A stretch of DNA of 64,000 nucleotides from Mizuhopecten yessoensis. Lineage: Eukaryota. Location of the stretch: assembly GCF_002113885.1 (NCBI RefSeq), contig NW_018408648.1, forward strand, positions 260,423 to 324,422, in the 5' to 3' direction. A program made the position numbers and the translations under genes. The notes under the pieces were generated by a model, which was not told where the DNA came from, ran no database searches, and was given only the letters and a program-made list of their open reading frames with translations. Numbering within the stretch: position 1 is the first letter of the stretch; each line of letters begins with the position of its first letter. Shown here one piece after another: positions 12,901 through 56,287 of the stretch.

Positions 12901-15900
12901 GGGGTCTAACACCAGTCACTGTCATACAGGGGTCTAACACCAGTCACTGTCATACAGGGGTCTAACACCAGTCACTGTCATACAGGGGTCTAACACCAGT
13001 CACTGTCATACAGGGGTCTAACACCAGTCACTGTCATACAGGGGTCTAACACCAGTCACTGTCATACAGGGGTCTAACACCAGTCACTGTCATACAGGGG
13101 TCTAACACCAGTCACTGTCATACAGGGGTCTAACACCAGTCACTGTCATACAGGGGTCTAACACCAGTCACTGTCATACAGGGGTCTAACACCAGTCACT
13201 GTCATACAGGGGTCTAACACCAGTCACTGTCATACAGGGGTCTAACACCAGTCACTGTCATACAGGGGTCTAACACCAGTCACTGTCATACAGGGGTCTA
13301 ACACCAGTCACTGTCATACAGGGGTCTAACACCAGTCACTGTCATACAGGGGTCTAACACCAGTCACTGTCATACAGGGGTCTAACACCAGTCACTGTCA
13401 TACAGGGGTCTAACACCAGTCACTGTCATACAGGGGTCTAACACCAGTCACTGTCATACAGGGGTCTAACACCAGTCACTGTCATACAGGGGTCTAACAC
13501 CAGTCACTGTCATACAGGGGTCTAACACCAGTCACTGTCATACAGGGGTCTAACACCAGTCACTGTCATACAGGGTCTATTACCAGTCACTGTCATACAG
13601 GAGTCTAACACCAGTCACTGTCATACAGGGGTCTAACACCAGTCACTGTCCTACAGGGGTCTAACACCAGTCACTGTCATACAGGGGTCTAACACCAGTC
13701 ATTGTCATACAGGGGTCTAACATCAGTCACTGTCATACAGGGGTCTAACATCAGTCACTGTCACACAGGGGTCTAACACCAGTCACTGTCATACAGGGTC
13801 TAACATCAGTCACTGTCTTACAGGGGTCTAGCAACAGTCACTGACGTACAGGGGTCTAACACCAGTCATTATCATACAGGGTCTATTACCAGTCACTGTC
13901 ATACAGGGGTCTAACACCAGTCATTGTGGTACAGGGGTCTAGCACCAGTCACTCATACAGGGTGTAACAACAGTCACTGTCATACAGGGGTCTAACATCA
14001 GTCACTGTCATACAGGAGTCTAACACCAGTCACTGTCCTACAGGGGTCTAACACCAGTCACTGTCCTACAGGGGTCTAACACCAGTCACTCTCGTACAGG
14101 GGTCTAGCACCAGTCACTGTCATACAGGGGTTTAACACCAGTCACAATCATACAGGGTCTATCACCAGTGACTGTCATACAGGGGTCTAACACCAGTCAC
14201 TGTCATATAGGGGTCTATCACCAGTCACTGTCACACAGGGGTCTAACATCAGTCACTGACTTACAGGGGTCTAGCATCAGTCAATGACATACAGGAATTT
14301 AACACCAGTTACTGTCACACAGGGGTCTAACATCAGTCAATGACATACAGGAATCTAACACTACTCACTGTCATACAGGGGACTAACACCAGTCACTGTC
14401 GTACATAAGTTTAACACCAGTCGCTGTCATACAGGGGTCTACTAACACCAGTGGCTGTCATACAGGGGTTTAACACCAGTCACAATCATACAGGGTCTAT
14501 TCCCAGTCACTGTCATATAGGGGTCTATCGCCAGTCACTGTCACAGAGGGGACTAACATCAGTCACTGTCATATAGGGGCCTATCACCAGTCACTGTCAC
14601 ACAGGGTCTAACTCCAGTCACTGTCATAGAGGGGTCTAGCACCAGTGACTGTCACACAGGGGGCTAACATCAGTCACTGTCACACAGGGTCTAACTCCAG
14701 TCACTGTCATAGAGGGGTCTAGCACCAGTGACTGTCATACAGGGGTCGGACACCAGTCACTCTCATACAGGGGTCTAACACCAGTGACTGTCATACAGGG
14801 GTCTAACACCAGTCACTCTCGTACAGGGGTCTAGAACCAGTCACTGTCATACAGGGGTCTAACACCAGTCACTCTCGTACAGGGGTCTAGAACCAGTCAC
14901 TGTCATACAGGGGTCTATCACCAGTCACTGTCACACAGGGGTCTAACATCAGTCACTGACTTACAGGGGTCTAGCATCAGTCAATGACATACAGGAATCT
15001 AACACCAGTCTATGTCACACAGGGGTCTAACATCAGTCACTGACTTACAGGGGTCTAGCATCAGTCAATGACATACACGAATCTAACACCAGTCACTGTC
15101 ACACAGGGGTCTAACACCAGTCACTGTCATACATTGATCTAACTCCAGTCAATGTCATACAGGGTCTAACACCAGTCACTGTCATACAGGGTCTAACACC
15201 AGTCACTGTCCTACAGGGGTCTAACACCATTCACTGTCATACAGGGGTCTAACACCAGTGGCTGTCATACAGGGGTCTAACACCAGTCACTGTCATACAG
15301 GGTCTAACACCAGTCACTGTCATACAGGGGTCTAACCCTAGTCACTGTCCTACAGGGGTCTAACACCATTCAATGTCATACATGGGTCTAACACCAGTGG
15401 CTGTCATACAGGGGTCTAACACCAGTCACTGTCATACATGGGTCTAACACCAGTCAATGTCATACAGGGTCTAACACCAGTCACTGTCATACAGGAGTCT
15501 AACACCAGTCACTGTCACACATGGGTCTAACATCAGTCACTGTCATACAGGGGTTTAACACCAGTCACTGTCATACAGGAGTCTAACACCAGCCACTGTC
15601 ACACATGGGTCTAACATCAGTCACTGTCATACCGGGGTTTAACACCAGTCACTGTCGTACAGAAGTTTAACACCAGTCACTGTCACACAGGGGTTGTCAT
15701 ACAGGAGTCTAACACCAGTCACTGTCATACAGGGGTCACACTGTCGTCACTGTCACACACGGGTCTAACATCAGTCACTGTCATACAGGGGTCTATCACC
15801 GGTCACTGTCACACAGGGTCTAACACCAGTCACTGTCATACAGGGGTCTAACACCAGACACTGTCATACAGGGGTCTAACACCAGTCATTGCCATACAGG

Positions 15901-17030
15901 GGTCTAACCCCAGTCACTGTCGTACAGGGTCTTACACCAGTCATTGTCATACAGGGGCTTTACACCAGTCACTGTCATACAGGGGTCTTACACCAGTCAC
16001 TGTCATACAGGGTCTAACACCAGTCACTTTCATACAGGGGTCTAACACCAGTCACTGTCATACAGGCTCTTACACCAGTCATTGTCATACAGGGGCTTTA
16101 CACCAGTCACTGTCATACAGGGGTCTAACCCCAGTCACTGTCATACAGGGTCTAACCCCAGTCACTGTCATACAGGGGTCTAACACCAGTCCCTGTCATA
16201 CATGGTCTTACACCAGTCATTTTCATACAGGGGCCTAACCCCAGTCACTGTCATACAGGGCTCTAACACCAGTCACTGTCATACAGGCGTCTAACACCAG
16301 TCACTGTCATACAGGGTCTAACACCAGTCACTTTCATACAGGGGTCTAACACCAGTCACTGTCATACATGTCATTCAGGGTCTAACACCAGTGACTGTCA
16401 TACAGGGGTCTAACACCAGTCACTGTCTTACATGGTCTTACACCAGTCATTGTCATACAGGGGATTAACACCAGTCACTGTCATACAGGGCTCTAACACC
16501 AGTCACTGTCATACATGGTCTAACAACAGTCACTGTCATACATGGGTCTAACACCAGTCACTGTCATACAGGGTCAAACACCAGTCACTGTCATACAGGG
16601 CTCTAACACCAGTCACTGTCATACAGGGGTCTAAAACCAGTCACTGTCATACAGGGTCTAACACCAGTCCCTTTCATACAGGGGTCTAACACCAGTCACT
16701 GTCATACATGTCATTCAGGGTCTAACACCAGTGACTGTCATACAGGGGTCTAACACCAGTCACTGTCCTACAGGGGTGTAACACCAGTCACTGTCCTACA
16801 GGGGTCTAACACCAGTCACTGTCATACATGTCATTCAGGGTCTAACACCAGTGACTGTCATACAGGGGTCTAACACCAGTCACTGTCATACAGGGTCTTA
16901 CACCAGTCATTGTCATACAGGGGCTTTACACCAGTCACTGTCATACAGGGGTCTAACACCAGTCACTGTCATACAGGGTCTTACACCAGTCATTGTCATA
17001 CAGGGGTTTAACACCAGTCACTGTCATACT
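6951..17030. repeat. ~10 kb tandem satellite, 27-28 bp unit GTCTAACACCAGTCACTGTCATACAGGG
   Basis: Directly visible, roughly 360 units. Perfect 28-mer core at ~12006-13570 with diverged flanks. Confidence 0.99.
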
Positions 17031-22371: not shown

Positions 22372-24261
22372 ATGCAGCCAGTAGGAAGATATGAACAAAC
22401 AAATGCCAGAATGGCACGTTATCGTCAATCCCATAATTCCTATGAAGAGGAAGATCCCAACAGTCCACGATCCATGAACAGCGAGCTATTTCAGGATCTG
22501 GATGTTCATATCACCCATCTTGATTCTGTGTCACAAAACAACTTGGGTTTTAATTTTCAAGAAACAGAGCAAGTGCATCACCATTACATACAAAACAAGG
22601 CATTTCAGGACACAGAAGAAGTGCGCCGACATTACATACAGAACAACAGTAATGGCAATAACAAGAGTCCACGTGGAGCGAAATTTCGCACGGAGTCGTC
22701 ATCTGCCAAGGCTAAACTTGCCAAGATCATCACAGTGCCAGGGGCTGAAGATCCAAACCATTTAAAGTACCAACCTTCTACTCCGAAGACTGGTGAAAAT
22801 CATAAAGGAGGACAATCCATCAAGGGCCCTGTTCAAGGTATACCGGTACCCCAGGGGACCGTAAGGGGAGTACCAGTATCCCCGAGGACAATGAAGGCTG
22901 TTCCTCACTCCCATGGGACAGTGCAAGCAAGTGCCACCTATCCAGGAAGTATGCGTGGTTATCCAAAGACCAATGGTCATTTAACGCAGAGCCGACGCAG
23001 AACCCCCAGTGCCGAGACCAAGACTGGTTCTATAGCATTTCGCAGACAACGGCCAGAACGAAAAGAATATTATGTCACACAATTCGACATAGAATTTGAC
23101 AAACATGAACGCCACCGATTTCTACCAGGAGAGGAGCTCACTGGGAAGATAATATTTGACGTAAGTAACGAAATGGACATTCGTTTTATTGAACTATTGA
23201 TAATTGGCCAGACCACAGCAACTCTTGTACAGCCGGAGTCTGGTGTATCGACCACAAAACGAGACGTGTTTCTTAGTAAACGCTCTTACATCATTGGTTC
23301 CCCTGACGGACGTTGGACATCACTCGTCACCCCGGGACACTATGTCTCCAATTTCCGTTTACAGTTGCCTGAAGGCATCCCCACATCCATCACTTATCAG
23401 GACAAAATCAACGGCTTCAACATGGAAACCACGTACCTTGTGAAAGCCCGGATTTGTGATGATGTAGGGTCGTCATCCTCAGCACGAAGTACACACTCCA
23501 TGAACAATTTTGTCAAAGTGTTGGTATCACGCAAACAAGTGTTCCATGTAAAAAGACCTTTTGACATTCATTCTGTTCCTATGGCGATGACGCCTGTGAA
23601 CCATGTTGAAGATGTTCCCATAACATGCTCTGTGTTCTCGGTTAAGGAACCTGCAAACATTCACATGTCTCTGGATCGGTCCTGCTTTCTTGCCGGTGAC
23701 GACATAAAAATCCACCTCGAGACCGAAAACCGCTATGCAAATAGAATTAAAAAGATTACATGTGTTCTGAGGCAGACAGTTACTGTCAAAGGAGTCCGCT
23801 CCAAAGCCCAATTCAACATCGCCAATGTTGAAGAGAAATATCCGGAGGGCACCATCACAAAGACAAACAAGAGTAACATCATTTTCTATGACATCCATCT
23901 CCCAACCCACACAAACTTTTTACCTAGTGTCATGCCTGGATGTCGTCTCGCAACAATTCGCTACAGCCTCATTATGGGTGTCAGTTTCAAGACATGTGGC
24001 GGAAAGCTCGTGCTGGACATCCCGATAAATCTCGGCCCTTGTACTGATCCTGTACGCCTAGACAAGACTAATTCGGTCCCCTTCTTCAATCGGCCACTTC
24101 GGTTCCCATACTTCTCCCCACATTCGAATGGGACTGCCAATGGAGACGTACCCCAAGTCCTGAAGAGCCCCAAGTCAGGGCCACCAATAACATCCAAGTT
24201 CTCATACGGAGCATGTTCTAGCCGATTCTGCTGTTGTTGGGGAGACAACACATTGATATGA
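22372..24261 (+). CDS. Arrestin-domain-containing protein (alpha-arrestin-like), 629 aa, CDS in one exon
   Basis: Arrestin_N motifs (FDIEFD..FLPGEELTGKI..; PGHY..F.LQLPEGIPTS; Y.VKA.I) and Arrestin_C motifs (LDRSCFLAGDDIKI.L..EN; PS.MPGC.L..IRYSL; LDIPI.LG). In-frame TAA at 22357-22359 fixes the start. Splice acceptor tttgtttcag ends at 22291; AATAAA follows the stop. Confidence 0.9.
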   Translation: MQPVGRYEQTNARMARYRQSHNSYEEEDPNSPRSMNSELFQDLDVHITHLDSVSQNNLGFNFQETEQVHHHYIQNKAFQDTEEVRRHYIQNNSNGNNKSPRGAKFRTESSSAKAKLAKIITVPGAEDPNHLKYQPSTPKTGENHKGGQSIKGPVQGIPVPQGTVRGVPVSPRTMKAVPHSHGTVQASATYPGSMRGYPKTNGHLTQSRRRTPSAETKTGSIAFRRQRPERKEYYVTQFDIEFDKHERHRFLPGEELTGKIIFDVSNEMDIRFIELLIIGQTTATLVQPESGVSTTKRDVFLSKRSYIIGSPDGRWTSLVTPGHYVSNFRLQLPEGIPTSITYQDKINGFNMETTYLVKARICDDVGSSSSARSTHSMNNFVKVLVSRKQVFHVKRPFDIHSVPMAMTPVNHVEDVPITCSVFSVKEPANIHMSLDRSCFLAGDDIKIHLETENRYANRIKKITCVLRQTVTVKGVRSKAQFNIANVEEKYPEGTITKTNKSNIIFYDIHLPTHTNFLPSVMPGCRLATIRYSLIMGVSFKTCGGKLVLDIPINLGPCTDPVRLDKTNSVPFFNRPLRFPYFSPHSNGTANGDVPQVLKSPKSGPPITSKFSYGACSSRFCCCWGDNTLI

Positions 24262-40089: not shown

Positions 40090-43000
40090 TTAACAATGAG
40101 TTTCGTCGTAACATGTCTTTGCTTCAGTGTTTTCATTGATATGCATTTCCCCTGCATAGATATCCCAAAATTGGTCAGATGTAGATGTTGTTGGTTCCAT
40201 TTGCCTGTGGTATTGTACCAGCGGTACATCACAGCCTTCCATAGAAACCTGAATGGAAACTCCGCCATCGTTTCCAGTTTCTGAACGAAATTGTTCCGAT
40301 GAGTTATCGCTGTGCGAGACTTCTTCGTTGATATCTGATGCACAATCTAACGGCTGTACTTTATCTGTGTCGATGACATTATTAGTCTGAAAATAAATAG
40401 CAATAAGTTAGATAAGAGTATGATTGTATGTTCGAAATTCATTCACCACTTGTTCACATATATTATCTTGTTTGTATAAAATTATGAACAAAATCGTTTA
40501 TATTTTAAGTGTTTAGTAATGACATACTGATTTGAAATATGTCTATACGTAATAAGTAAGTATAAATAGGTTAAGGTATATTGTTATTGAATATTGCACT
40601 ATTACTAGGCGTATTTATAACCTACTAAAACACATATCGATGTTTTTGCCTTTTAATTAAGATTTACCTGTCCGGAGTATATATGTTTTTGTCTTAAAAT
40701 GTCAAATCGACTAGCAATTTTTAACCCCAAAAGTAATACTGTATTAAGACCTTACCTAAATAAGTGTTACAATATTTATCAGGTGTATACCTCAGTAGTA
40801 TATATTCAAACATGCACTCCTTCAATTTCAGCAGATAATTGACGAAGGATTGAATATTGAACATTCTTCTTAACGTTTCGGGATGTTCTCGCATTAAATT
40901 GCCACACTAGAAACGTAAAACTTACCTTTAAACCAGAACTGTTAGATTTGATGATGAAACAGACACACACAAACACTAAGACGCTGACCGCCATTAAGAT
41001 AGGTGCAACGATCAGAGAGACAGCAGTAGGCGATATGCAATGCTTCTTTGTCGTATCAAGGACGGTATTTTCGGGGCATTGGTTTACACATTGGTTATCA
41101 TAAACAAGAAGATCGTTCGATTCATAGCATTTTGATTTCAGTATACAGGATGTATTATTGTATACCATTGACAAAGCCGTGCACTTTTTAACACACATAA
41201 AATTAAATATTTCGCTTCTGAATGGATGCGATGCCGGACATTGATGAACACAAGTGTTGTCTTCTGTATATAACATACTATCACAAACCATGACACATTT
41301 CAGTCCATCAGTAAATCTTGAAGCAGGACATTTTGTGTGGCATTCTGTATCCTTATTATTAAAGAGTTTTGTTTCTGTGAATTGGTGTGTTGCTGGGCAC
41401 TTTTCAACACATTCTTTGTTAACAAAATAGCTATCACATGTGGTCACACATTCAAAGTTCTTAATAAATTGACTGTCTAGACACGCTTTTCTACAAATCT
41501 TTCCTTTAAGAGACTGTTCAAAAAAGCTGTACTCGGGTGGACAAGAGAATGAATTAATGCATATATTATTCACGATAGCGTTATGGTTAGAACAAGAGGG
41601 CACACAAGTTGCATTTTCCTGGACATAGCGATCTATGCATGTGCTTCCACAAATGTTTGCTTTTGGTAATGGTGAAGACAAGTTCACGTCTTTTGGACAT
41701 GCTTTAGTGCACTCATTATTTACCAGAAAACGTGAATCTGATGGACACGTCTGAACACATGTGTTGTTTGATATGACATCCGGTTGTGTGCAATTAAAAA
41801 GGCATTTTCTCGTTTGTGGGTCCAGGAGTTTGTGTATGCCATCACATTTATGCACACATGTTTGACCGATTGAATACGGATTAGATTTAGGACACTTTGG
41901 TATGCATTGATCTTCAAAAACAAACCGCGGTTTAAAACACGACTCTTCGCAACGGAACAAATTCTTACGTTTTGGGTACGCATTGTACAAAAAGCGAAAC
42001 TTGTGTGATGAGGGACATCGGTGTAAACATGAACGGTTTCCATAGAAAGATGCAAGTGGCTCTGGGCATTCAATGTAGCATTTATTATCCAACTTATATG
42101 TGTTATCTGGACACCGACTGACACAGTGTTGAAGCCAAGTCCCATCTGCCTCCTCGTTGTAAATAAACATGTAAGATACCGGGCAATGTGTGACACATGT
42201 AAAGTTGTGTGACAATATTGGACAGTGATCAACACATTGATCATCCAAAGAGAACTGTTGATATTCTTTGCAACTAGACACGCATCGGAAGCCAGTTGAT
42301 GATCCTGCTTTGACAGTATAGTTAAATCTGTGTGTCATTGGACACTCATCGACACATGTTTCATTGAAGTAACTCGTAAGCAAAGGACAGGTGTCAACGC
42401 ATGTCATATTAAATTCCAGTTTTCCCGATTGTTCTCCTGTATTCTTGCAAGTGTCAACGCAATATACTGGATTCTGTCCATTTCGTTGCGTCGATGTATC
42501 GACGAAATGCAACGCATGTGTCAATGGGCATACGTGGTGACATGTTTCATTGTATATATATGCTGCTTGTCTAGGACAGATAAACACACAAGAACCGTCA
42601 AAACTGTAATAATCATTCGGACAACTCGCAAAACACCTTCGCTGAAAATTAAACCTGCTAACATCAGGACACTTTTCAACACACGTGTTATTATATGTGA
42701 ACAGATTGGATGGACAGGTGCTACGGCACGTCATATTATACAGAATAGTGCCTGGGCTTTTACCTCGCTCCTCACATGAATTGACACAGTAGTTCAAAAC
42801 AGAAAAACGATACTTTCTTGCTGTTAATGGGTGTGTTTCCGGGCACGTGTTTCGGCATTGCTCGTCGAAAAGATATTTAGCTTCTTCCGGACAGCGAAGG
42901 AGACAGGAACCGTGAAAATTCACATACGGATAATTACACCGAGGGAAACATTCCCCACGGAATAGATAATGTTTAGAAGGGCATGCGTCAACACATTCGT

Positions 43001-46000
43001 CCTTTAACACTTTATATCCAGAGGGGCAACTTCCCATGCATGTCATATTGAACATATATCTAGCATTAATTGGACAACTTTGTAGGCAGGATGTATCGTT
43101 AAATATAAAGGAATTTGTTGGACAAGCCGAAACGCATATCTGTTGATAAGTATATTTATGTTTTTCTGGACATTCTTTAACGCAAGTCCGATTAAAGATG
43201 TTCATTTCCGTAATACATCTGTGAACACATACAGTGCCATCTGTATAAGTTTGGTCAGGGCAGTAGGGTAGACACACAGGAGTTTTGTACGGGGGCAACC
43301 GCCTCGACAGGACATAGACAAAGGGCACATAATCTGGGCATTTTTGAACACATGACATATTCCAAAGAAAACTCAATTCTCTAGGGCATTGAATCTGACA
43401 TTTACTTTCGTTGATATTTGTAAACATTGGGCATCTGTCCAAACAAAGGCTTGTATTCCAAACAGTAAATTCGTACTTGTTTTTCGGCAGGCAGGAATCT
43501 ATGCAAGTCGCACTGGTTCTATACTTGCCTTGGGGGCATGTTTTAGTGCATTCAGATTCTGAAAGAACATATCCTGTAGAACAATTTGCAACGCACTTAT
43601 TAGCTTCGATGAAAGGATACTCTTTAGGGCAATCTTCTACACACGTGTTGTTGAAAATGTATGGGCTTAATTTTGAGCAGGTATAAACACAGGAAAAGTC
43701 TTCAATCACAGTTCCCAATGGACAAGTAGTGTGGCATTGGTAGTTAACGCAAAACGGCCTCACATTTGGACAAAACCCTTTCTGACAAAGCAAATTTGCT
43801 CCAGCATTTTGGCGTTCAGATGATGCAGTTGTTTGAACTGTTTTCGAACAAACCCCAAACTTCGTTGCTTCATAACCATTCGGACAAAAGGTTAGACACA
43901 AATTTTCGAATAAAAATGGTGCGAATTCCGGACATTTCCTCGTGCAATTTGAGGCGAACTCAATTTGGAAGTCATTCGATGGACATTCTACTATAGTTTG
44001 ACCGTTGTAATGAAAAAACATGCTGTCTGCTGACTCATCCAGGTTTTGCTGTGGAAATTCAAAAAAACATGTGTTATTTTGAGTTAAAAAATGGTTTTTC
44101 GACTCATCAACAGTCAACAATTGAAATGTTGATGTCTAAAACGTTCGATCAGGGCATCTATGTGCTACGCAAATAGTGCTGAGGTATTGCGGAATACTGA
44201 TATTCTTAAATGCATTTTCATACTTGATGTTTGGATAAACTTTGATCAATGTGTGCCTAAATGAAGTTGCTAGAGCGATGCCACTGAATTATTTTGACAA
44301 ACAGTACTTGACCGTTGTGTACACATTCTGATTGAAATACGATACGAAGTGAAGTCGCGAGAGCTATGAAACTGAATATCGGAGACATCAAAATATAATC
44401 AATCGCCACTACATAAGGTAATTTTCTGATCTCAAACTCGATGCAAAAAGGAACCTGTTAGATTTTGGGATACAACTTTCTCCCAACACCTGTAATTATA
44501 TTAAGGCGAATGGCTAGGGAGACACTGTCGAACACATGTTGATTTGCAGGGACCCAGGTCAATCACCTATTATGATAGCATACAGTGGAATGCAATAAGC
44601 CTATTCTTTCTTCGAACCTGCACAGGCTGTCAGAAAAGGAAAAGAAATCTAGACAAACAGAAAAATACCATGAGCCCTCAATAACACCGAATTGTCCTTC
44701 TGTATTACAGTCTTTCCGAAAAGAGATAAATAATAAGGATATGGGCTTACTTCGTTTATATTTGTTTCCAAACTTCGAAAGGATTGCCAGTTCTACTAGT
44801 TGCTGAACCAAGCTTTTTTCAAAATTTACTGCCATTTTTTGTACAAACACTCAGGGTTACAGACTATTTGTTACACTGTATAATAAAGAAGTGGATGAGT
44901 GTGAAGAGATTTAACGTTTGTTTCATTAATAATTAAAAAACAGGAGAATAACAAATGACAAAAAAAACTATAAATCGAAATCGAAATTGATAAAACTAAG
45001 GGATAATATGAACAAAGAACAAATTTACACTGCAGACAATGAAAAGTACAAGGAAAAGGAAACCTGGTGTTCATTAAAGATATTTGTCTTTTGCTTCATT
45101 GATGACACCCGCTTTGTAAATCTACGTCAGGAACAACTAATGGCATGTCCTCAAATTAAAAAATCGGGTAGTGAAAACAAAATGCAATATAATCAAAAGC
45201 ATCGACATTCATCGAGCTTGCTCTGAATATCAAAACTTCCGTGATTGATGTCGACTGCTGCAAACGAACAATACAGGGTTTTAAAAGATGCAGGTTGAAG
45301 AAGACTATGAGCATGTTTTATGTTCATCATTGTTGATTTCTACGAGAGTATTTCTTTGGATGCTCTGAAGGTCGACGTTTCTGATTCTTTCCTTATAGAT
45401 AAGTAAAATCTTTGTATTCCTCGTATTTATTATGCTAACTAGAGTACTTTAGAGTGTTTTTTTCATTGTGAATTACCCGGTTCTCGCTTAGAAGAGTAAC
45501 TTAAGTTAAATTTGGCATAGATTTACATGACGAGTGTCGTCGATGAAGCAGAGGACGCTTACCCTTCCGGAACACCTGATCTTAATCTCCTTTGACACTT
45601 CAACATTCTCTTGTTGGTTTATTGGTAAAAGTTTCAGCAACTCCTGATATTGATCCAATACCTAATATCATCATCTCATGTTCTCAAATAAATATAATAG
45701 CTGTATTTATACTACTAAACGGACTGTTTTAAATAGATTATTGTCTGTTTTATAGATAGATTTTACAAAATTTTTGTTCATGATCTCCATATGGTTATCT
45801 TGGCAGGTAGCAGTAAACCTATAAGAGTTTTCTATCATTACGGGAAACGAAAGTGCGGATCGTTTTACACAGGACGACGCTTGAGTCAACTTTTCACGAC
45901 CTACTGTGTGGGGAATGCATGTGCCATTGTCTGTGACGTTACATTCAAATCAGGTGACACTTTCGAAAAGGTGCCGTTAGAAGCATTGTCGCATCGTAAT

Positions 46001-47075
46001 ATAGATCACAAATTTGTCTTTAGCATACCCGCGTATATGTAGAGGTATTAAGCACGGTGGCATATTACTAGTAGTAAGTTAAGACAGTTTCTGCCAAATC
46101 CTCAGATGGTATTCATTTTAGGAATGGTATTATTTTGTATTGTATAACGCCCTCGATTGGCTTGTTATAGCCGGAAAGTGCGCTATATCGGATGTCGTGT
46201 TATATAGGTTTCCTTATTGACTATTTATAATGAAAAGTTCCTTGACGTTTCGATGACAAGTACGATATGTACACTGTCACCTTCATCAGGTAAATGACCA
46301 GTGAAGCGTATGCAGTGTAAAATATGAACGAGTTGTCGACAAAATCGAAGTCGATTTCGGCTACGCTGTAAGCGTATGTACACTAGTTGTTATATATGTA
46401 TCAAAATGACTCGATCCAGCTACGCTTATACTTACCAATCTGAAGAAAATGTTTAGAAATATCCTTATTGACTAGTCTGTACAAATACAGTGGTATGAAT
46501 TAAAACAGAAAAAAATATTTATATATATATATATACATACAAGTGCGTCACTTCAGTATCCATGGACAAAAATCAAACTCGCAGTCGTGTCATGATTCAA
46601 AACCCTTATGCGCAAATATATATGTGTATACACGGAACAATTCAAAACCTTTAAATAAAACCGATCACATGCCTCATTGAAATGCAGCGGTGCAGCTGTA
46701 TTGTCTTCAACAATACGTTGTCGGTCGTCACAACACACAAGAGTGAGCCCACTTCATAAATATACACATTATAGCAGCTTTTCAGAATGTGTGACGGAAG
46801 TATTGTTACAATTAAAGGAATAGTGGCTGGATGACACATTCAAAGGTAAGCACGTTGCCGCATATTAATAATTCACAATAGATAAACAACCGCTACTATG
46901 TGTATTTATTTTGAATAAATCAATCATATACACATATCAATATTTATTACTTGTATAAATAATGTTTATATTCCAAAGAAACAAATGGTATCTGTTATAA
47001 TTGACTTCTTACCTGTGTAACTAGGAACGAAGCTATAAAAACAAACACACAGAGCTGATGTCTATCCATGATCAT
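40090..47075 (-). CDS. Cys-rich furin-like-repeat type I transmembrane protein (PCSK5-CRD-like, no protease domain)
   Basis: Exon 1 47075/47069-47013 encodes signal peptide MIMDRHQLCVFVFIASFLVTQ (donor gtaaga). Exon 2 44135 (or ancestrally 44489)-40926 has dozens of CxxxCP repeats and TM AVSLIVAPILMAVSVLVFVCVCFII (donor gtaagt). Exon 3 40386-40090 is an open acidic tail TNNVIDTDKV...CYDETHC*. All junctions are phase 0. Confidence 0.8.
40926..44135 (-). CDS. Main exon of Cys-rich membrane protein (ectodomain + TM)
   Basis: 1104-aa ORF in the track. The part after ...SSGLK is read-through of the donor at 40925. Confidence 0.88.
45515..45590. mobile_element. Possible Penelope-like element remnant
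   Basis: gcagaggacgcttacccttccggaacacctgatc resembles, from memory only, a motif common in bivalve PLE-related repeats. A hammerhead motif lies ~650 bp away. Confidence 0.35.
46238..46294 (-). ncRNA. Minimal hammerhead-like motif (Penelope type)
   Basis: Minus strand: c CUGAUGA a GGUGACA-guguac auauc guac u-UGUCAUC GAAACGUC aagg. Core is intact, stem II is long, stem III is palindromic ACGU, stem I is poor. Confidence 0.55.
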
Positions 47076-47681
47076 AACTGTTCGTCATATAGCATACGGT
47101 GTTGAATAGCACATTGCAAAACTTCCTGTTTCTAAATATATCGCTTTGTCCATGCAGTCACGCACCCAAGGTTGCTTAGCTTCCTTTGTATATTATAATC
47201 AATTTACGAATCGAATAGGGGATCTTTTAAAACGACATCTCAAACTCAAGTTTTCGCTAGATTGTAGGTTGAGTATAAGAAAAATAACTTATCGACAATG
47301 TTTTGTTCAACAGTTCTCCATACTATGCAGGGGAGATAAGAAGAGATTTTATTCTCGACACTTACCCAAGATTTTGCCGTGGCTCAGGCACTCTGAGATT
47401 TCTCTGTTACTGCCTCAAGGTAGGTGGCAATTATGTTTCTCCCATCTATTAGTCACACAACTCCATGGACAGTAGCTTTAAAAAAGCATGACAGAATATA
47501 AATAATAAAAACTAATACACATTTATTAATTCATCACTTGCAAAATAACGAATAAATCAATATTGGATCTACACAGGCATTCCTACAGTAACCATTTGTT
47601 TAGCTAACAGATTTCCCTGTCTAATTTTCAGCTTATTTTGATATTATAAAGAGGTTTGTCGACAAATGAAAGAGTTAATAG

Positions 47682-48560
47682 CACAAGAGGCCTAGGGGAC
47701 TTAACGTTTACCTCAGTGAGATTGACAAAGCAAAACTCGTGAGAGCGATACATCAGGTTGTAATCTTTTGTAAAGCTAAACCACACAGACAAATTAATTC
47801 TTCATACGACACACAGATAGTTCACTTAAACGAAAAATACACTAGAAAAAGTATATAAAACTACAAAGTTATGAGGTTTTAACATATTTCAAAATACACG
47901 TGTATCAGCACGGTAGGATATATCACGTTGGTTTCCCTTTCGGTATTAAAAGATTCGTGTGACTATTGCTACTACTACTGTCATCGAGAAATTAACTTCG
48001 TTTCCATGAACTTGATAAAACAAACACCATTGTAGCATAAGCTGAATGTTAAACCAATATGAAAAAGCATAGTCGCTTGTACATACAAGCGGTCGAAAGT
48101 ATGAACGGGATGGCAACATAAACAAAGTAGCGTAATATCGACGTTAAAAGAAAGCATAAATGAATAAAATAGTTGTTTGTAAAATGTTTGAAACCTCTAA
48201 CTCATAATATTTGGCTGAAATTGTGTGTCTGTTCAAAACATGGAGCTGCTATTTTACCTTGACTTCCGGAAGCGATGACATTGCTGAATGCAATTGATTA
48301 AATTGAGAAGGTGTGTTTTGAAGATTTTGCACACAGTTCCCCCTTATGGCCCCAATCCTCAGGCACCTAAGGCGTCAGCCCCTTCTCGAGTATAAATTCT
48401 GATCTTCATCATCTAAGGATCATTTCATGAAATGTTGCTCAAAATGCACTGGTAAGTTTCAGAGATGTTTTTTGAAGATTCTGCACTCAATGACCCTGTA
48501 TAGCCCCACAACTCAGCCCCCAGTGGTGTCAGCCCTATCTTGAGTACACCTTTATTTCGT
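47682..48560. mobile_element. Degenerate HINE-like element
   Basis: Starts acaagaggcctagggga..tttacct; two diverged internal units (tttgaagatt..cccc..gtcagccc). Confidence 0.45.
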
Positions 48561-49105
48561 CAGAAATTGAAAGGCAAACAATTGGTAACCTCACAATATA
48601 TTGCATGTTGTTCTTTGGTCTGGTTGAAGCATTATACGTGTCACTAAGAGAAAAGAAAAACTGCTGTGTTAACCAGGAATTGATTTTTGGATCATTGTTA
48701 GTAATCATAAACAAAAGAGAAAGAAAAGAGAAAAGAATAGGAAAGAAAAAACATATACATCTATCTGTCCCTGCTGGTCGTCGAGCCTTTTACCTTTATA
48801 TTTCGAGTTACATGTCGTGTTTAGTACCCAATATTCGACAATAAATGAGCGCTTTAAGGTTTTCATTGACACTATTCTAGCACAGGAAGTCGTGATTCCT
48901 TGTCATCTCTGTCTTCCCACAAGATAATATAGTAAACAAACAAAAACAAATAGCGATATATAATACAAATTGTCATATGCCGCTTCAAACCACAAAATAC
49001 ATAAAACTCAGTAACAACCGTACTAACGGCTTCTTCTTACTCTGTACTACCCCGAATACTGCTCCGAACTGGCCTGATCCTCTTATGAGATCATACCGCA
49101 GCTTT

Positions 49106-49221
49106 AAAGTGAAACTTTATAGTTTCACCTTGCTTTAAGCTCGCAGATAGAGTAATAAAAGTACACACTATGTATTATTTTAACATGATTTCAGATAGTT
49201 TATTGGATATGGCTATATAAA
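49106..49221 (+). promoter_or_regulatory. Putative promoter of the TIR gene: inverted IRF-like pair, CCAAT and TATA
   Basis: AAAGTGAAACT-ttat-AGTTTCAC (49106-49128), ATTGG at 49202, TATATAAA at 49214-49221. A downstream donor G|GTGAGT at 49359 implies a non-coding first exon. Confidence 0.5.
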
Positions 49222-49762
49222 CGACAGATTTTTTTTAATAAACTGGCGAATTGGTCCATTTGAGTGACAAAAATTCACTTGATCATCAAAAAATATCAGC
49301 AATTTTTTGTTTAATATTATGATACTGTAGTAAACAATATTCTTCTACATACATTTCTGGTGAGTTTTTTAACCGCTATGTCAGACAAAAATAAGATTTT
49401 ACTACAGAAAACATTTCAGCTGACTTTGATCCACACCATCCGGATTACTGCGTGCCGCTTGTATCGGGGTACCGAAACAAATTCTTCGTCAGTCAATCAT
49501 TTAATTTTTAATGTCTAGAGTGAATATCATTCGAACCTATAGATGGGTTGTGTTTGGAATCATCGATGGGTTTTTTCAAGATGGACATAAGTTATAGATG
49601 TTGAAAGACAATGGTTAAGTTGCCATATAAAATCAAATACATCATCTTAAGTTAATTAAAACATAAGGCAAATTTACATCAGAATACCAGTTTTATAAAC
49701 AAAATACAATGCAACTCAATTAGTAATCTCTTGTTCTAAAGGTAATAACTTGTATAAGGAAT

Positions 49763-52700
49763 ATGCTTGAGGAAGCGGTACCACTCCTTGCCGATGAAAA
49801 TGAGGCCACAGAACACAGGGATTCCATAGACGAGATTCAGAGCAGATACTTGTCAGCTGATAACGAATATCATGTCTTCATATCATACAGCTCAAACGAC
49901 GCTGATTTCGTCGAACAACTAAGAAGACATCTTGAAGAAGACCTGAAATTTAAGTAAGAATTTTTAGGACAAATGCAAAATAATATTCACAAAGGCTGAG
50001 CTTTTATTTTCTAATTTAGAACATCAAATACCAAACTTCTTATTTTTGACATACCGGTATGAAAGAAATCTTTTAATATGAAAAATATAAATATTCCTTA
50101 TAGTTACTTTTCTGGCCACGGAATTGCATGCTAGTTAAAGATAACTTTAACATGAGAATGTGATAACTAACAGTAAATAACGTATCAATACAACTGGCAG
50201 AAGAATGAGACTGATGATGGGTGTATTATAATATGAATGAAAAATAGAAGTAATCTAAATAGCGAGATTTAATCATGTAATATAATACTGTAATGAGAAA
50301 ATGAAGTATAATTTATTATTATGATGACAAGTGTGATTATTTCTAACTGTCATTTTTAAGAATATGGTCACATTGTATATCACCTATGTCTGCGTTTTGT
50401 TCGTCATGCAATAGGTCCATGCTGGATGCACACTTTACACCGGGCAAATCAGTTATAGACAATATGTCCAACTCGTACGACAAATGTGAAAAAGTGCTCT
50501 TCGTCGTGTCAGAACATTTCTTGGGTAGTGGATTCTGTGAGGAGGAGGTGAATCTTGCATACCAATATGCAATGGAGAAAAAACGGAGGGATTACATAGT
50601 TGTACTGAAAATAGATGAAAGCCAACTAGACAGAAAACTTCGCACATATACATACATCGATGGAGTCGACCGCGATATTGACAAAATCGGGAGGAAATTT
50701 CAAATGGCATATGCTAGATGCGGTAAGCTTTTGTGAAAGATATAGAACTACCTGTGATGTGTTTTAAATTTTAAAGCATCTTCTACCTTAATTGATAGTA
50801 TCATTTTAACAAAATTCTTTTATTACTTCATTACTGATGTCAATACTCAATATTTTAGGTTCAGCTGCTGTTGACGAAGAGAATAGTAATGGAACCACAA
50901 TACTGGTTAAATATCCAGTGGAAGAGTCGCCCAACCTGTTTGGGGGGATGAACTATGTGTTCCCTGACCTTTCTGAGGATGAAATGGAAAAGCTAAGATC
51001 TTCTGACATAGAGGTAGGTAGATCTTCTAACATTTTCGTGAGACAATTATCTACATTATTCAAAGGCGCATTTCTATCAATTGATAATTATTAAGAGTAT
51101 TTATAACTGCCCTTTATTCGATCTGAAATTGATAAAACTATGGCAACTATGACAAATAGATTTCATGAATGAAGTTCTTTCATAAGAAGAAGTTTAAAAC
51201 TTGGGAAGCGTTTTCTGATTCATCGACGACATTCATCGTGTATACTTAGTTCAAATTCAAGACAAACAGCACCTCCAAAGTCTAAATGGTAAAAAGACAT
51301 CGAAACCATAAAGCACACAAATGAGCATAACCAAAATCGTTATTAACTAATTGCAAAATATTTATAAACGTATACACAATTACATGTACATATATACAGG
51401 TGTCTATGCATAACTTGATACGAAAAAGCAAAGTTTGGAAAAAAAAACCCGTAGCTTTTGTTAATCTGTGATATTTTAAGGATTCGGAATTTTTGAATTG
51501 TAGATGATTGATATTCACAAAATAAGTTTACAACAGCATAACAAAACATAACAAAAACAATTACACGTTTAAAGAAATTTACATTTTATTTTTTTGGTGT
51601 CTACGAAGCATTCAGCGACTTGCTACAAAGCTATTCAAACAGAAATCAACCGGACTAGGCTACTAAATCGATACTCAATGGTTGATGGATGTACAGTGAT
51701 GAAAAAACGGTGTGTTTTTTGTGGAATGTTCACGGGATGTTTAGCGTTTCTATGTTCCATTTTGGCCATCACGTATTGGGCAAACGGTTTTCTCAGAAGC
51801 CACTGGTTCTGGTTCGCGGGTGTGGTTGTGGTATTAGTTTTATCCTTGTCTTGCTCTGCTGGAATCGCCATAATATGGACCCAAAGGATTCTGAAAAAGG
51901 TTAGTTACATAATTACAAATCAAAGTAGGGGTGCTAAATCAACACTGAAGTTCAGTTACCTTGTTATGGTCAACATATAAGACCAATAACGCTTGTGTGT
52001 AGAGAGCACCGCTTAAATTATATTCACCTAATAAGAACATGGAATGCGTCTGTTGATATAAAGACAGCAGATACAGTTAAGTACAAAACTTACGACCCTA
52101 GTGTTGAATGTTATAAGAAATGCGTTGACTTTCATATGGCAGTATACATGCAGTAAAACCGTTTATAACATTGTTCGGGTAATTGAGTGGTATCTGAAAC
52201 ATTTGTTATGTCAAATATATTTATAGTCGCCACACAGTGGAAACTGTAATATTATTATACTGTACCAACTTTATTTTTCAGATATGCGACGGGTTGAGAT
52301 CCATTGCCAATACCAACATGAACTTGAAAAGTAACAAATACATCCTTTTGTCAAGGAAGGATTTTAACGGTTTCCATGTATCCTCAATCACAAAGATTTT
52401 TCCAACTCAATAAGGATGAGTGTCTACGAGGCCCTTTTTGGGCCCCGGTATATCCAGATTTTCACCTCCTTTATTTGATCAAAGGTGTCCTATTGTATCA
52501 CATGTGCAAAAACTAAGGCGAAAGTGGGTTTTTTGGGGTACCAAAAAGGGGAAGAATAAATCACAAATATAAATTGCTGTTTTCAAAATGAGCTAAAACA
52601 ACCAAAACAATACCATTTCTGTTTTTGAAAACACATGTAAATTAAATCCGGATATACCAGGGCCCAAAAAAAGGGCCTTATAGTCACTCATTCAAAATTG

Positions 52701-55700
52701 AAAACACATATCATTTTATAATTCACGAAGAATCATGGGATTCAGAATTGGTCCAAATGTCATACAGCAATGTAAGCATCCGTCTAAAAACCTTGAATCT
52801 AAACCTATAAAGTTATACATTATAATCAAAGGATTCCTCATAGTTAAAATAGTACGATTCTTGACATGTTAAACAGCTGATGTTTATTTACTACGACATC
52901 GCCCCTTGCTGGGTAAGTAAATACCTTTATTATGTAACATGTGATATTCCAAAATGTTTCCCTAAAATGGGTGTGTCATTTCTAGACAGTATACGTATTT
53001 ATACTGCAGAGTCTAAGGAAGTTCAGTTTTTTTAATTAGACTTTCAATTAGAAATTCATTTAATATCTTCTACGAAAAAAATCAACTTACACGGACTTTG
53101 ACAAAAACAAATCGCTTCTTTATAGTCTACGTACACTGTCTGGCGATTTTTCATGTACATTGCCTGCAGCAGACGTAATTTAATGCGATTGTTCTTATTT
53201 TTTTTTAAAGCATTTCATTTCGCTCTACCCTGTATGTAAGTGTGAAAAATATCAGAAATAATATTTTCTAAGAAAACCTCTTTTAAATGGCGCTATCAGG
53301 GGTCACGTGGTTTAGATTCATGCCCGCTCAGCGGTTAACCGGTCTGGTGCATGTTTATCAGTTTTTATTAGTTGTTTTCCACTAAAAATCTGCTATCAAA
53401 ACATGTTTTGTTTACCTTTTACGGATGATTTTGAACGATTTCTTAGGTCAGTATATAATCTATATGAGACGTTATAACACCAGGTCAATCAATTTTGAAC
53501 ACCTTATTTTAAATCAAATTGAAATTTGTTTATTTCCCTTTTCTATAAATTTATAAACATTTTTAACAACAATTAGGACAATAAAATCAACCAATATTAA
53601 TCATTCTTCGTGGCTTGGACAGTAGCGCACAAGTGTTTTTTTTTTGTGGCAGGAAATCTGAGTACCCGGGGAAAACCGAAGTGGTGACCTTGTACTTGTT
53701 CACGTCCAATCGGGGAAGCGAACACCAGCCGTTTGGTGAAAGACGAGTGCGCTAACCACTGCAAATCTGACTATACCCTAAAGATTCGAATTTTAATGTA
53801 ACATTGCCATACTGAAAAGCGGTTGTCCAGGCGATGTTGTTCAGCAACGTAGGTAGTGGTCAGTGACTGGATAGGTGTCCACCCGCTCATTACACAATAT
53901 TAAACACATGTACATAATATTTCATACTCAATGTTAAAGTCTTATATGATCATGTTAATACTGTAATCTTCATTGTTTAGGAATTCTTTAAAGGACATGT
54001 GGAGTGGTCGGATACTTCTCAAGAATATACAAATGTAAGTCATCATCATTTGGTTCAATATGTCTCATCAATGCACATGTCTTTAGATTTTTTTTTATTA
54101 ATCTTTAGCCAATTGAAAAATAAAATATTATCTCAAATATTAATTAGATGATCAGGAATCAAATCTTCACTTGGTAAACGGCTCGCTAATGGTAAGTCAA
54201 AATCTTGGATATTTTCATATTTATGTTTCAAACTGAAAACATTTTGAAAAATAATTTATATACATATACATGTCAACACGCAAATTCTTCTATATCTTCA
54301 TAAATGTGATTAAAGACCATGAAATAGGAATGTTCTTCCCGTAATTCTATGTCAGATTTATTTTTCAATGCCCTATTCGGTTATTGATTACCCAATTGAG
54401 CAACAGTAGTTACAATGATAAGCAAAATTTTCAAGAAATTTTCCTGGCCGATCAGTTAGACTCCGCATGAAGCGCCTGCATTGCCTTCAGCATTACAAAG
54501 GGGAATACTAACGAGTGACCTCACTGAACATGATCAACATCCTTTATACCAACTATAAGTGGTCATTTTGCTTTTTATGTAACTTTTCTTTTTCACTTAC
54601 TCGTGGGCCAGTTTTTAATATTTTGTTTTTATTGGCACCCCACTTTTCAATCCTTATTGAACATTTATTTAGATCTCACAGTTCTTCACTATTCACTATT
54701 TATTTATATGACAATAACGATGCTATTTTCTAGTCCGCCGTCATTAATAAATTACCTATTCACAAAATTCATAGTTTCTTTTTGAGCAGCCAACACATTT
54801 TTTACTGTTAACTTTATTTTTTGTATTGCTAGAAAATGTGCAGGTGGATATTCACGCAGGCCATTGTGTTATATTACGGTGGCCAACACAATAATATCAC
54901 GGTGACAAATAACCCAAGGCATCCGATGGGGACATTTCATAGCTGCCTCTGTCAACTGTTAGACATCACAAGGACAGAAATTAATGAATCTGAAAGACTT
55001 AAAGCGGTAAGAATATTGCGAATAGTATACTCTAAATCTAAATATGTGTACAATGTTGTGCAGAGGAGTGTGTGAGGAGTCAAAGTGGATATGAGATTGT
55101 TGAATGTTGTGGGTTGCAAAAACCTATTTGACTGCAAATTATGTAATAATATACACTAATTGACAGAAATATCGTTATTAATTTGACCTAAAATGCTTTA
55201 AAATAGGGCAACGACGACTAGGTTAGGGTCACAGAAACCGTGTTTAATTTTTTTATGAAATACCTTCGTAAAATATGCAAGCTCACACTTATTATGTATT
55301 TATCATACCTTGTTTACGTCTTGGAATACAATTTTTTGTATTTGTAAGCATTATGATCTAAACTACACAACAGTTTAGCAACACCAACAAAAAAATCAAA
55401 ATACCCCATGAGATTCATATTATTTACAGCTGACAAAATAACAAAGTTATATCAAACATTAAAAGAGGGTGAGTTGGCTGGGTATAACAAAATCACAGGG
55501 CGATGCTTTTTTCTACTGGGTATGCTTAAGATGGGAGTGTCAAGTACAGGAACTATTGACAGTTTTAAAGCATTGTTGATCGATATACCTCTGTTGGACT
55601 ACCAATGCCGCTCAATGTGGGGTTTCCCTAATTTATGATACATAGTAATATACTGACGACTAGGGACACTATTACGGTAAGTAATACGGGACACCACAGT

Positions 55701-56287
55701 CCATTGCTACCGCCTACCTTACCTACATACATAAACGTTATACCGTCATATCTGTCATGGTCAAAATCAATAATACGGTACATAGTCATAGTCATACCCT
55801 CATCATAAATCGGTCGCGGTTTATTTAGAGTACCCTCCGTTTTTTTGTGTTATATCTCCATAACATGAAAAATATATTCAAGTTAATCCTTAAATATTTA
55901 CTAATGTTATCAGTTATCTAAAGAAACTTGTAACACGTATTTTTTGTTTGAGTCGTTTGGAAACGCAATGCTTATACGGTGTAAAACGGAAAAACAAACC
56001 AATCAGAGGTCATCTACACACGATATTTTTAAGGAACAGATATTTTATTGTCCACACGATATAAGTTGCCTAGTATGAGATCTAAAAACTCCCTGGTTGT
56101 CAGACTGTTTGTCTCCGTCCATGATATTGTAGACAATCCGATTTTGTCGTAATTAATATGTATTTCATTTGTTTTACAGAAAACCCTGAAGAGTCACACC
56201 GAGGATGAAGAGACGTGTGTAATGAAAATCGTTGGATCAGAACCAGCTGACAACGTGTCGTGTGCAGAAGAAACGGTTGAAATATGA
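49763..56287 (+). CDS. TIR-domain protein with C-terminal two-TM TMEM268-like region
   Basis: Exons: 49763-49953, 50415-50722, 50859-51013, 51609(or 51597)-51899, 52282-52377, 52877-52912, 53981-54034, (54156-54191 uncertain), 54833-55006, 56180-56287; phases are compatible. TIR box1 YHVFISYS, FTPG, VLFVVSEHFLGSGFCEEE. Two hydrophobic segments in exon 4; FIYYDIAPC and RH..CLCQ motifs. Confidence 0.82.
52416..52691. mobile_element. MITE in TIR-gene intron
   Basis: atgagtgtcta..gggccctttttgggccccggtatatccagattt pairs with aaatccggatataccagggcccaaaaaaagggccttatagtcactcat. Confidence 0.8.
53650..53772 (-). mobile_element. V-type SINE copy
   Basis: ggaaatctgagtacccggggaaaacc...gtgcgctaaccactgc. 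Confidence 0.55.

Follow-up and report, generated by a model that had tools for sequence, protein, structure and literature searches.

A head-to-head pair of furin-repeat and TIR membrane protein genes in the scallop Mizuhopecten yessoensis, a candidate two-part receptor

Bivalves possess very large innate immune gene repertoires, but for most of their TIR proteins and Cys-rich surface proteins neither a partner nor a ligand has been assigned. Two such genes lie side by side in a 64,000-nucleotide stretch of the genome of the scallop Mizuhopecten yessoensis (contig NW_018408648.1, positions 260,423 to 324,422; hereafter the window, to which all positions given without a contig name refer). Gene A, on the minus strand (47075 to 40090), encodes a 1,160-residue type I membrane protein with Cys-rich repeats, and gene B, on the plus strand (ATG at 49763, stop at 56287), encodes a 470-residue protein (P0042, LOC110461612) with a TIR domain, two transmembrane (TM) helices and a C-terminal module. 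An earlier note on this DNA proposed that the two products work together as a sensor and a TIR signalling subunit. Do these neighbors belong together? We found the same arrangement in scallops, oysters, clams and abalone; genes A and B therefore look like one unit and may encode a two-part Toll-like receptor. We place the probability that they are a conserved, co-inherited unit at about 0.9, and the probability that they encode a sensor-plus-TIR receptor complex at about 0.5.

Linkage and co-duplication of genes A and B

We addressed the linkage within M. yessoensis with six-frame searches of the whole genome (988 Mb; cut-off for a B-type TIR exon, E below 1e-9), followed by tblastn mapping. 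These searches gave seven B-type TIR loci and about ten A-type repeat loci, among which four head-to-head A/B pairs were found on four contigs. Besides the pair of the window, tblastn mapping placed one on contig C2292 (A to 1050276 on the minus strand, B exon 1 at 1057826 on the plus strand), one at 113-125 kb of C76620 (A exon 1 at 118842, minus; B exon 1 at 120028, plus) and one on C4782 (B exon 1 at 590572, minus; A from 597156, plus). The presence of a partner could not be judged for B loci on C4467 and C72783 and for A loci on C82305 and C76411, which are at a contig end or on a short contig. The chance of finding a B-type locus within 15 kb of a given locus is about 2e-4, whereas 4 of the roughly 10 A-type loci have one in divergent orientation; the adjacency of A and B is therefore not due to chance. 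The microsynteny among paralogues that the earlier note had asked about is thus present in four paralogous copies within the same genome, with matching A and B subfamilies.

The cluster on C76620 (loci L006-L015) comprises three A copies that are 78-81% identical and two B copies that are 92% identical, and just one A/B couple in it stands head-to-head, with about 1.2 kb between the two. At 84139-87261 of this contig, the reading frame of the A copy is interrupted by a TGA, which may point to a pseudogene or to a mistake in the assembly.

The head-to-head arrangement was also found at 8/8 informative loci of other molluscs, which represent two classes and were queried from both the A and the B sides. 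Starting from A homologues, we found a TIR gene on the opposite strand and immediately upstream in Argopecten irradians, Ylistrum balloti, Mercenaria mercenaria and the gastropod Haliotis rufescens, and one upstream on the opposite strand in Saccostrea echinata, where 277 bp separate the gene ends. No gene was called at this place in Pecten maximus, but tblastn located B exons 1-4 where a head-to-head partner would be expected, and in the matching orientation. Starting from B homologues, we found a furin-like gene head-to-head in Pinctada imbricata and, across a 200-bp gap, in Ostrea edulis; the gap ranges from 0.2 to 8 kb across all pairs. The Pinctada and Ostrea B proteins share the build of gene B, and the Saccostrea neighbor has a two-TM exon and a 'NRHNTWLKKQCLCQ' end with the motif 'RH..CLCQ', which identifies it as B-type. 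The count of eight leaves out three loci with no record (P0019 of Dreissena, P0170 of Mya and P0131 of Mercenaria) and the locus of the hemichordate Saccoglossus (L028), where no furin-like gene was seen in the 8.7 kb upstream of the TIR-DUF4481 gene, in a locus that has 8,157 N and at which the contig ends. Loss of linkage in related genomes, together with uncorrelated expression, had been named beforehand as the result that would refute the pairing; the linkage proved to be strongly conserved.

In order to evaluate whether the two genes share a history, we compared identity matrices of A (large exon) and B (TIR exon) across ten pairs and observed a Mantel r of 0.92, a value reached in 0 of 10,000 permutations; among pectinids only, r was 0.93 (2/720 permutations). 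Maximum-likelihood trees gave a matching picture. The A gene of the window groups with the A genes of Pecten and Argopecten (support 100), and its B gene with that of Pecten (97). In the A tree, the copies from C76620 fall in one group with that of Ylistrum (support 100); in the B tree, the C76620 and C4467 copies form a clade (96) whose nearest relative by identity is Ylistrum B (62-65%). The match of A and B subfamilies across pairs shows that the pair duplicates as a unit, and the identity of only 29-35% between A subfamilies indicates that the duplications are old and that the arrangement was kept each time. The correlation between A and B is that expected from co-inheritance; it speaks for the pair behaving as a unit, and says nothing on whether the proteins touch.

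These results also decide whether the adjacency could be a coincidence, or neutral leftover synteny, between two large expanded families. That TIR and Cys-rich repeat genes are numerous in bivalves, and that the earlier note had one locus before it, would speak for such an explanation. However, four of the seven B-type loci in 988 Mb are head-to-head with A-type genes, the orientation is the same at all eight informative mollusc loci, and the subfamilies match across pairs. The synteny results effectively refute this explanation, and we regard it as extremely improbable.

Domain content of the two proteins

Gene A was searched exon by exon. Its exon 1 (47013..47075, minus strand), read directly from the sequence, begins with the ATG at 47075 and encodes a 21-codon signal peptide; its GT donor was verified. 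Exon 2 (40926..44048, minus) is an open reading frame (ORF) of 1,041 codons with checked AG acceptor and GT donor, and exon 3 (40090..40386, minus) encodes an acidic cytoplasmic tail of 98 residues that ends at the stop codon, so that every intron of the gene is GT-AG. The ectodomain consists of about 1,030 residues of furin-like Cys repeats, of which exon 2 contributes 1,011, and this share contains 114 Cys (11.3%), 23 N-glycosylation sequons and 38 'CP' motifs at a spacing of 15-16 residues. A single TM helix follows at about 40950-41015, at the C-terminal end of exon 2. Pfam assigned Furin-like (PF00757) to exon 2 in four stretches (90.9 bits against a cut-off of 26.8, E 9.6e-26) and nothing else to gene A, the tail being without any Pfam domain; a sequence comparison of the ectodomain with solved structures gave no relative at an E of 0.001 or below.

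The signal peptide is kept at the matching position in Pecten maximus (57% identity over 21 residues) and in the C76620 paralogue (68% over 19 residues), and the tail is 51% identical in Pecten maximus (over 71 residues) and 44% identical in Argopecten (over 50 residues). In the nine species from which A-family proteins were collected, these always have one C-terminal TM helix and tails of 18-132 residues, and those with a complete annotated N-terminus also carry a signal peptide. The tails are acidic, are conserved among close orthologues only and are unrelated in sequence between subfamilies, and a signalling domain could be recognised in none of the A-family members examined. Databases name the whole family 'PCSK5-like'. 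Gene A has the furin-like repeat type of PCSK5 (PF00757), but Pfam found in it neither the subtilisin-like catalytic domain (Peptidase_S8) nor the P domain of that proprotein convertase. PCSK5 was accordingly ruled out as an identity for gene A, and the name is an annotation artefact: A is a member of a mollusc-wide family that is mislabelled. The earlier description of A as an orphan Cys-rich receptor with a huge ectodomain and no recognisable signalling domain thus holds as regards the Cys-rich membrane protein and its domain content, while the word orphan has to be qualified, since A belongs to this family.

Gene B was handled through the database protein P0042, which we checked against the window exon by exon; its nine coding exons (1,413 nt in total, plus strand) each map onto P0042. 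Coding exon 1 (49742..49953) has 21 nt of 5' untranslated region before the ATG at 49763 and encodes the beginning of the TIR domain, with a TIR_2 match. Most of the TIR domain, with the BB-loop 'FTPGKSVIDN' and the glutamate of 'FCEEEV', comes from coding exon 2 (50415..50722; TIR_2 E 1.4e-11), and coding exon 3 (50859..51013), which is 69% identical in Pecten maximus, encodes the linker from the TIR domain to the hairpin. The two TM helices are encoded by coding exon 4 (51609..51899, helices at about 51708-51884). Exon mapping assigned the cytosolic C-terminal module to coding exons 5-8 (52282-52377, 52877-52912, 53981-54034 and 54833-55006) and placed the last coding exon, with the stop codon, at 56180..56287. 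An extra exon considered at about 55431 was rejected because it is absent from P0042.

The TIR domain occupies residues 36-150 of P0042 and scores 74.7 bits on TIR_2 (PF13676, cut-off 28, E 1.1e-20) and 34.4 bits on TIR (PF01582, cut-off 21.3). A linker of about 100 residues leads to TM helices at 252-274 and 282-310, which are followed by 160 cytosolic residues with the motifs YYDxxPCW and RHx(7)CLCQ. The same two-TM hairpin is present in the B homologues of Pinctada, Mercenaria, Mya, Ostrea, Saccostrea and Saccoglossus. As the loop between the helices has only about 8 residues, gene B has almost no ectodomain, and the view that it combines a signalling domain with next to nothing outside the cell was borne out. 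B-family members were gathered by exhaustive search with the TIR exon; word-index searches that started from P0042 or from an alignment of three B sequences gave scallop paralogues only.

The nearest solved relatives of the TIR domain are those of the Toll-like receptors (TLRs) TLR2, TLR6, TLR1 and TLR10 (E 2e-11 to 9e-9), followed by SIGIRR (E 2.4e-5) and MyD88, and the BB-loop Pro-Gly is intact ('FTPGKSVIDN', compared with 'FIPGKWIIDN' in TLR2). By these comparisons, the TIR domain of gene B is of the receptor type and closest to TLR1/2/6. The 'FCEEEV' glutamate aligns with a glutamate shared by TLR2, and hence cannot separate an NADase from a scaffold. UniRef gives the name 'Toll-like receptor 1' to P0042 and 'Toll-like receptor 6' to P0063. 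We considered and rejected the identification of gene B as a Toll-like receptor: Pfam and topology searches found no leucine-rich repeat (LRR) and no signal peptide in it, and its TIR domain is N-terminal to two TM helices. The UniRef names for B-family members are therefore misleading.

The C-terminal half of gene B is likely related to TMEM268, to judge from several sequence comparisons. DUF4481/TMEM268 clusters were its language-model look-alikes (0.88, 0.85 and 0.84, with 188, 182 and 181 shared features), and P0042 has the TMEM268 layout of two adjacent TM helices and a cytosolic C-terminal region. The Saccoglossus kowalevskii homologue P0123, which has the gene B build (TIR, two TM helices and a C-terminal RH..KCLCQ motif), scores 27.8 bits on DUF4481 (PF14800, cut-off 25; E 2e-6), and a profile of the mollusc module matched P0123 in hhalign with an E of 2e-4 and a probability of 46%. 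The same build in a hemichordate suggests that the TIR-TMEM268 fusion is older than molluscs. Separately, an exon at C5495:528529-528666 matches the C-terminal end of DUF4481 (25.4 bits) and is probably part of the canonical, TIR-less TMEM268 gene of the scallop.

Human TMEM268 has the two-TM layout (PMC6748091), and binds the cytoplasmic ends of integrin beta4 (ITGB4) and CD11b and shields them from degradation (PMC6748091, PMC11169502). Its docking on integrin tails is a known case of such a module attaching to a type I receptor through the tail. It also raises an alternative to a signalling pair, in which B would be a TMEM268-like stabiliser or trafficking partner of A, A would be an adhesion or matrix receptor, and the TIR domain would modulate or dampen Toll signalling in the manner of SIGIRR, with a role in adhesion, development or homeostasis. 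The known stabilisation of integrin subunits through their cytoplasmic ends, the presence of SIGIRR among the TIR matches (E 2.4e-5), the fact that no immune role is shown here and the action of TIR pathways in development as well as immunity are all compatible with this explanation. The TIR domain of gene B is nevertheless nearest to those of the signalling-competent TLR1/2/6 and keeps the BB-loop Pro-Gly, and the lineage-specific expansion of the A family and the fast divergence of its ectodomains and tails resemble what is seen in recognition receptors. We therefore consider a stabilising or dampening role for B decidedly unlikely, and a sensor-plus-TIR receptor the better account of the two proteins.

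Interleaved 5' ends and expression

The start codons at 47075 (minus) and 49763 (plus) face away from each other and are 2,687 bp apart, as the earlier note had it. This distance is not, however, the spacing of the transcription units. We mapped two contig-type and two raw-read RNA runs (X1, X3, X24 and X19) on 43960-49959 and found that the first coding exon of gene B is spliced, in X1, X3 and X24 and with GT-AG sites, to a non-coding exon at 47314..47419 (plus strand; AG acceptor and GT donor), 239 bp past the start codon of gene A. This exon is in turn spliced to a further upstream non-coding exon at 46727..46845 (plus strand), with a GT donor at 46846 and an undefined 5' end at or before 46727, as seen in contig record 12 of X3 and in a loose end of the X1 contig. 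The non-coding exons of gene B thus flank 47013-47075, so that gene A exon 1 lies inside the first intron of gene B and the two units interleave. If a head-to-head pair is taken to be one on opposite strands whose 5' ends overlap or are within about 1 kb, genes A and B are such a pair.

The interleaved 5' exons make shared regulation likely, and an overlapping promoter region may co-regulate the two genes. Both were found in X1 and X24, gene B alone in X3 and neither in X19, a pattern that is compatible with co-expression. Gene B had a depth of 16 in X1, 9 in X3 and about 4 in X24; gene A was weakly expressed, being represented in X1 by a single contig (depth 6) and in X24 by a few reads, and its exon 1 was covered by one to few raw reads in X24. 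An RNA contig over 43960-44048 splices at 44048, the boundary of gene A exon 2. The joint of the X1 contig (44048/46436; CT..AC on the plus strand, equal to GT..AG on the minus strand) leads to an alternative gene A 5' exon at 46436..46496 (minus strand), which contains an in-frame TAG.

This alternative exon adjoins a dispersed repeat resembling a miniature inverted-repeat transposable element (MITE) at 46243..46428 (no strand assigned), which lies in gene A intron 1, is about 185 bp long with short inverted terminal pieces and is not part of the system. A first look at the genome gave at least 2,300 candidate copies (about 88% identity), and the repeat is abundant in the RNA runs. The RNA depth of 110-250 over 46243-46428, with joints on opposite strands, is explained by this high copy number. 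A scan of 44000-50000 against Rfam gave no match.

The interleaving also suggests an alternative in which the linkage is held only by an overlapping or bidirectional promoter, the interleaved 5' exons resisting rearrangement while the two proteins act in unrelated processes or share, loosely, the same tissue. The interleaved exons, together with the very short gaps (0.2-0.7 kb) of Ostrea, Saccostrea and Ylistrum, would give a purely structural reason for retention, and it fits this explanation that there is no evidence of interaction and that unpaired A and B copies exist. On the other hand, retention through at least four old duplications and in two mollusc classes exceeds that of most bidirectional pairs, gaps of up to 4-8 kb in Haliotis, Pinctada and Pecten have not broken the pair, and the domain logic is complementary, an ectodomain without signalling standing beside signalling without an ectodomain. 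A linkage of purely structural origin is in our judgement possible but rather unlikely, and we favor the reading of A and B as partners in one receptor.

Elsewhere in the window, a satellite array at 6951-17029 (10 kb, 28-bp unit, about 360 copies, 85% match) accounts for a block of 49% GC in DNA that is otherwise 34-36% GC. A single-exon ORF of 629 amino acids at 22372-24261 (plus strand) matches Arrestin_N (E 2.5e-12) and Arrestin_C (E 3.2e-16) and represents a gene for an arrestin-domain-containing protein.

A possible two-part receptor and its nearest known systems

On the reading that we favor, A and B would each supply one half of a Toll-like surface receptor that has no LRRs. A would detect an extracellular cue; B, expressed from the same promoter region, would bind the TM or tail region of the neighboring A through its membrane hairpin or TMEM268-like part. 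Clustering of A driven by a ligand would then gather the TIR domains of B, and these in turn might recruit MyD88-type adaptors. The physical association of A with B, the direction of signalling, the sensing of a ligand by A and an immune role are the steps that we infer here. The sensor-plus-TIR-subunit idea of the earlier note has gained ground in part, through the conserved linkage, the complementary domains and the interleaved 5' exons.

Several observations nonetheless weigh against this reading. Unpaired copies exist in the same genome, both of A (on C1993, and at 15 kb and 84 kb of C76620) and of B (at 30-42 kb of C76620), and the Haliotis and Mercenaria neighbors show only the TIR part in the DNA compared, the C-terminal module lying outside it. 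The TMEM268 resemblance falls under the DUF4481 cut-off of 25 bits in the scallop protein itself (P0042 9.5 bits, E 0.74; P0044 11.9 bits), and an Atlas fold search with the AlphaFold2 model of the gene B C-terminal half (pLDDT, the predicted local distance difference test, 65) gave no match with a TM (template modelling) score above 0.35, and so no structural support for or against TMEM268. Evidence on expression comes from four runs whose tissue is not stated, with a low depth for A and with B, but not A, in X3, and the lone gene A transcript contig uses the alternative 5' exon with its in-frame stop. No conserved intergenic block was found between scallop genera, as blastn of the window's intron 1 and intergenic DNA against Pecten and Argopecten gave a single weak match of 43 bp. 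The long TIR relatives checked were either LRR-type TLRs or proteins with the TIR as their sole domain, and no single-chain fusion of furin-like repeats and TIR was among them; the TM helices of A and B have no complementary charged residues; and there is no direct evidence here for association, ligand binding or an immune role.

More broadly, and tentatively, we suggest that molluscs, and perhaps animals more widely, may have an ancient two-gene pattern-recognition module in which furin-repeat receptors duplicate together with a dedicated TLR-type TIR-TMEM268 adaptor. Such a module would be a non-LRR parallel to Toll-like receptors, and linkage would keep partner specificity, as in plant paired NLRs (nucleotide-binding leucine-rich repeat proteins). 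A unit kept head-to-head since before the split of bivalves and gastropods offers a pairing rule, by which a furin-repeat receptor would be matched with the neighboring TIR protein, and it suggests that split Toll-like receptors are not an oddity of Hydra. The database names 'PCSK5-like' and 'Toll-like receptor 1/6' mislead and are corrected by the analysis, which also ties TMEM268/DUF4481, a fold of which little is understood, to TIR signalling, as a hemichordate also has a TIR-DUF4481 fusion. Literature searches on TIR-DUF4481 proteins, on head-to-head TIR pairs in molluscs and on the LOC identifiers found no description of the A/B pair.

Among known systems, TLR1/2/6/10 resemble gene B in the TIR domain (best E about 1e-11) and in the BB-loop Pro-Gly. 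They differ from it in that gene B lacks an LRR ectodomain and a signal peptide and has its TIR domain before the membrane segments, and gene A has no TIR domain. TMEM268 resembles gene B as a two-TM hairpin protein; its cytosolic parts bind and protect a type I receptor at the cytoplasmic end, as is proposed for gene B, and the C-terminal half of gene B appears DUF4481-like. In contrast to the scallop protein, TMEM268 has no TIR domain; the scallop module is under the Pfam threshold, and the candidate partner here is a furin-repeat protein and not an integrin.

In plant NLR pairs (of the RRS1/RPS4 type, and Fom-1/Prv of melon), the two genes have a promoter region in common, one product serves as sensor and the other as executor, and the pair is passed on as a block. 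The scallop genes resemble them in being head-to-head, in their proposed split into a sensor and an executor and in their inheritance as a unit, an analogy of genome logic only: the plant proteins are cytosolic and contain NB-ARC and LRR domains, both of which Pfam found to be absent from A and B, whereas A and B are animal membrane proteins. Head-to-head genes for paired NLRs are treated in two reports (PMC10883720, PMC13360266).

In Hydra, HyLRR-1/2, which have an ectodomain and no TIR domain, and HyTRR-1/2, which have a TIR domain and almost no ectodomain, interact as a receptor (PMC3367398, PMC6321704). The domain content of the scallop pair is alike, A being an ectodomain-only and B a TIR-only membrane protein. 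However, the scallop ectodomain consists of furin-like Cys repeats and that of Hydra of LRRs, and the TIR domain of B is N-terminal to a two-pass hairpin and a TMEM268-like module, whereas that of Hydra is C-terminal to a single TM helix. Furthermore, A and B are a conserved head-to-head gene pair, and the interaction known from the Hydra proteins is a proposal for their products. By analogy, then, the nearest functional precedent for the scallop pair is the split TLR of Hydra, and the nearest genomic precedent is the head-to-head NLR pairs of plants.

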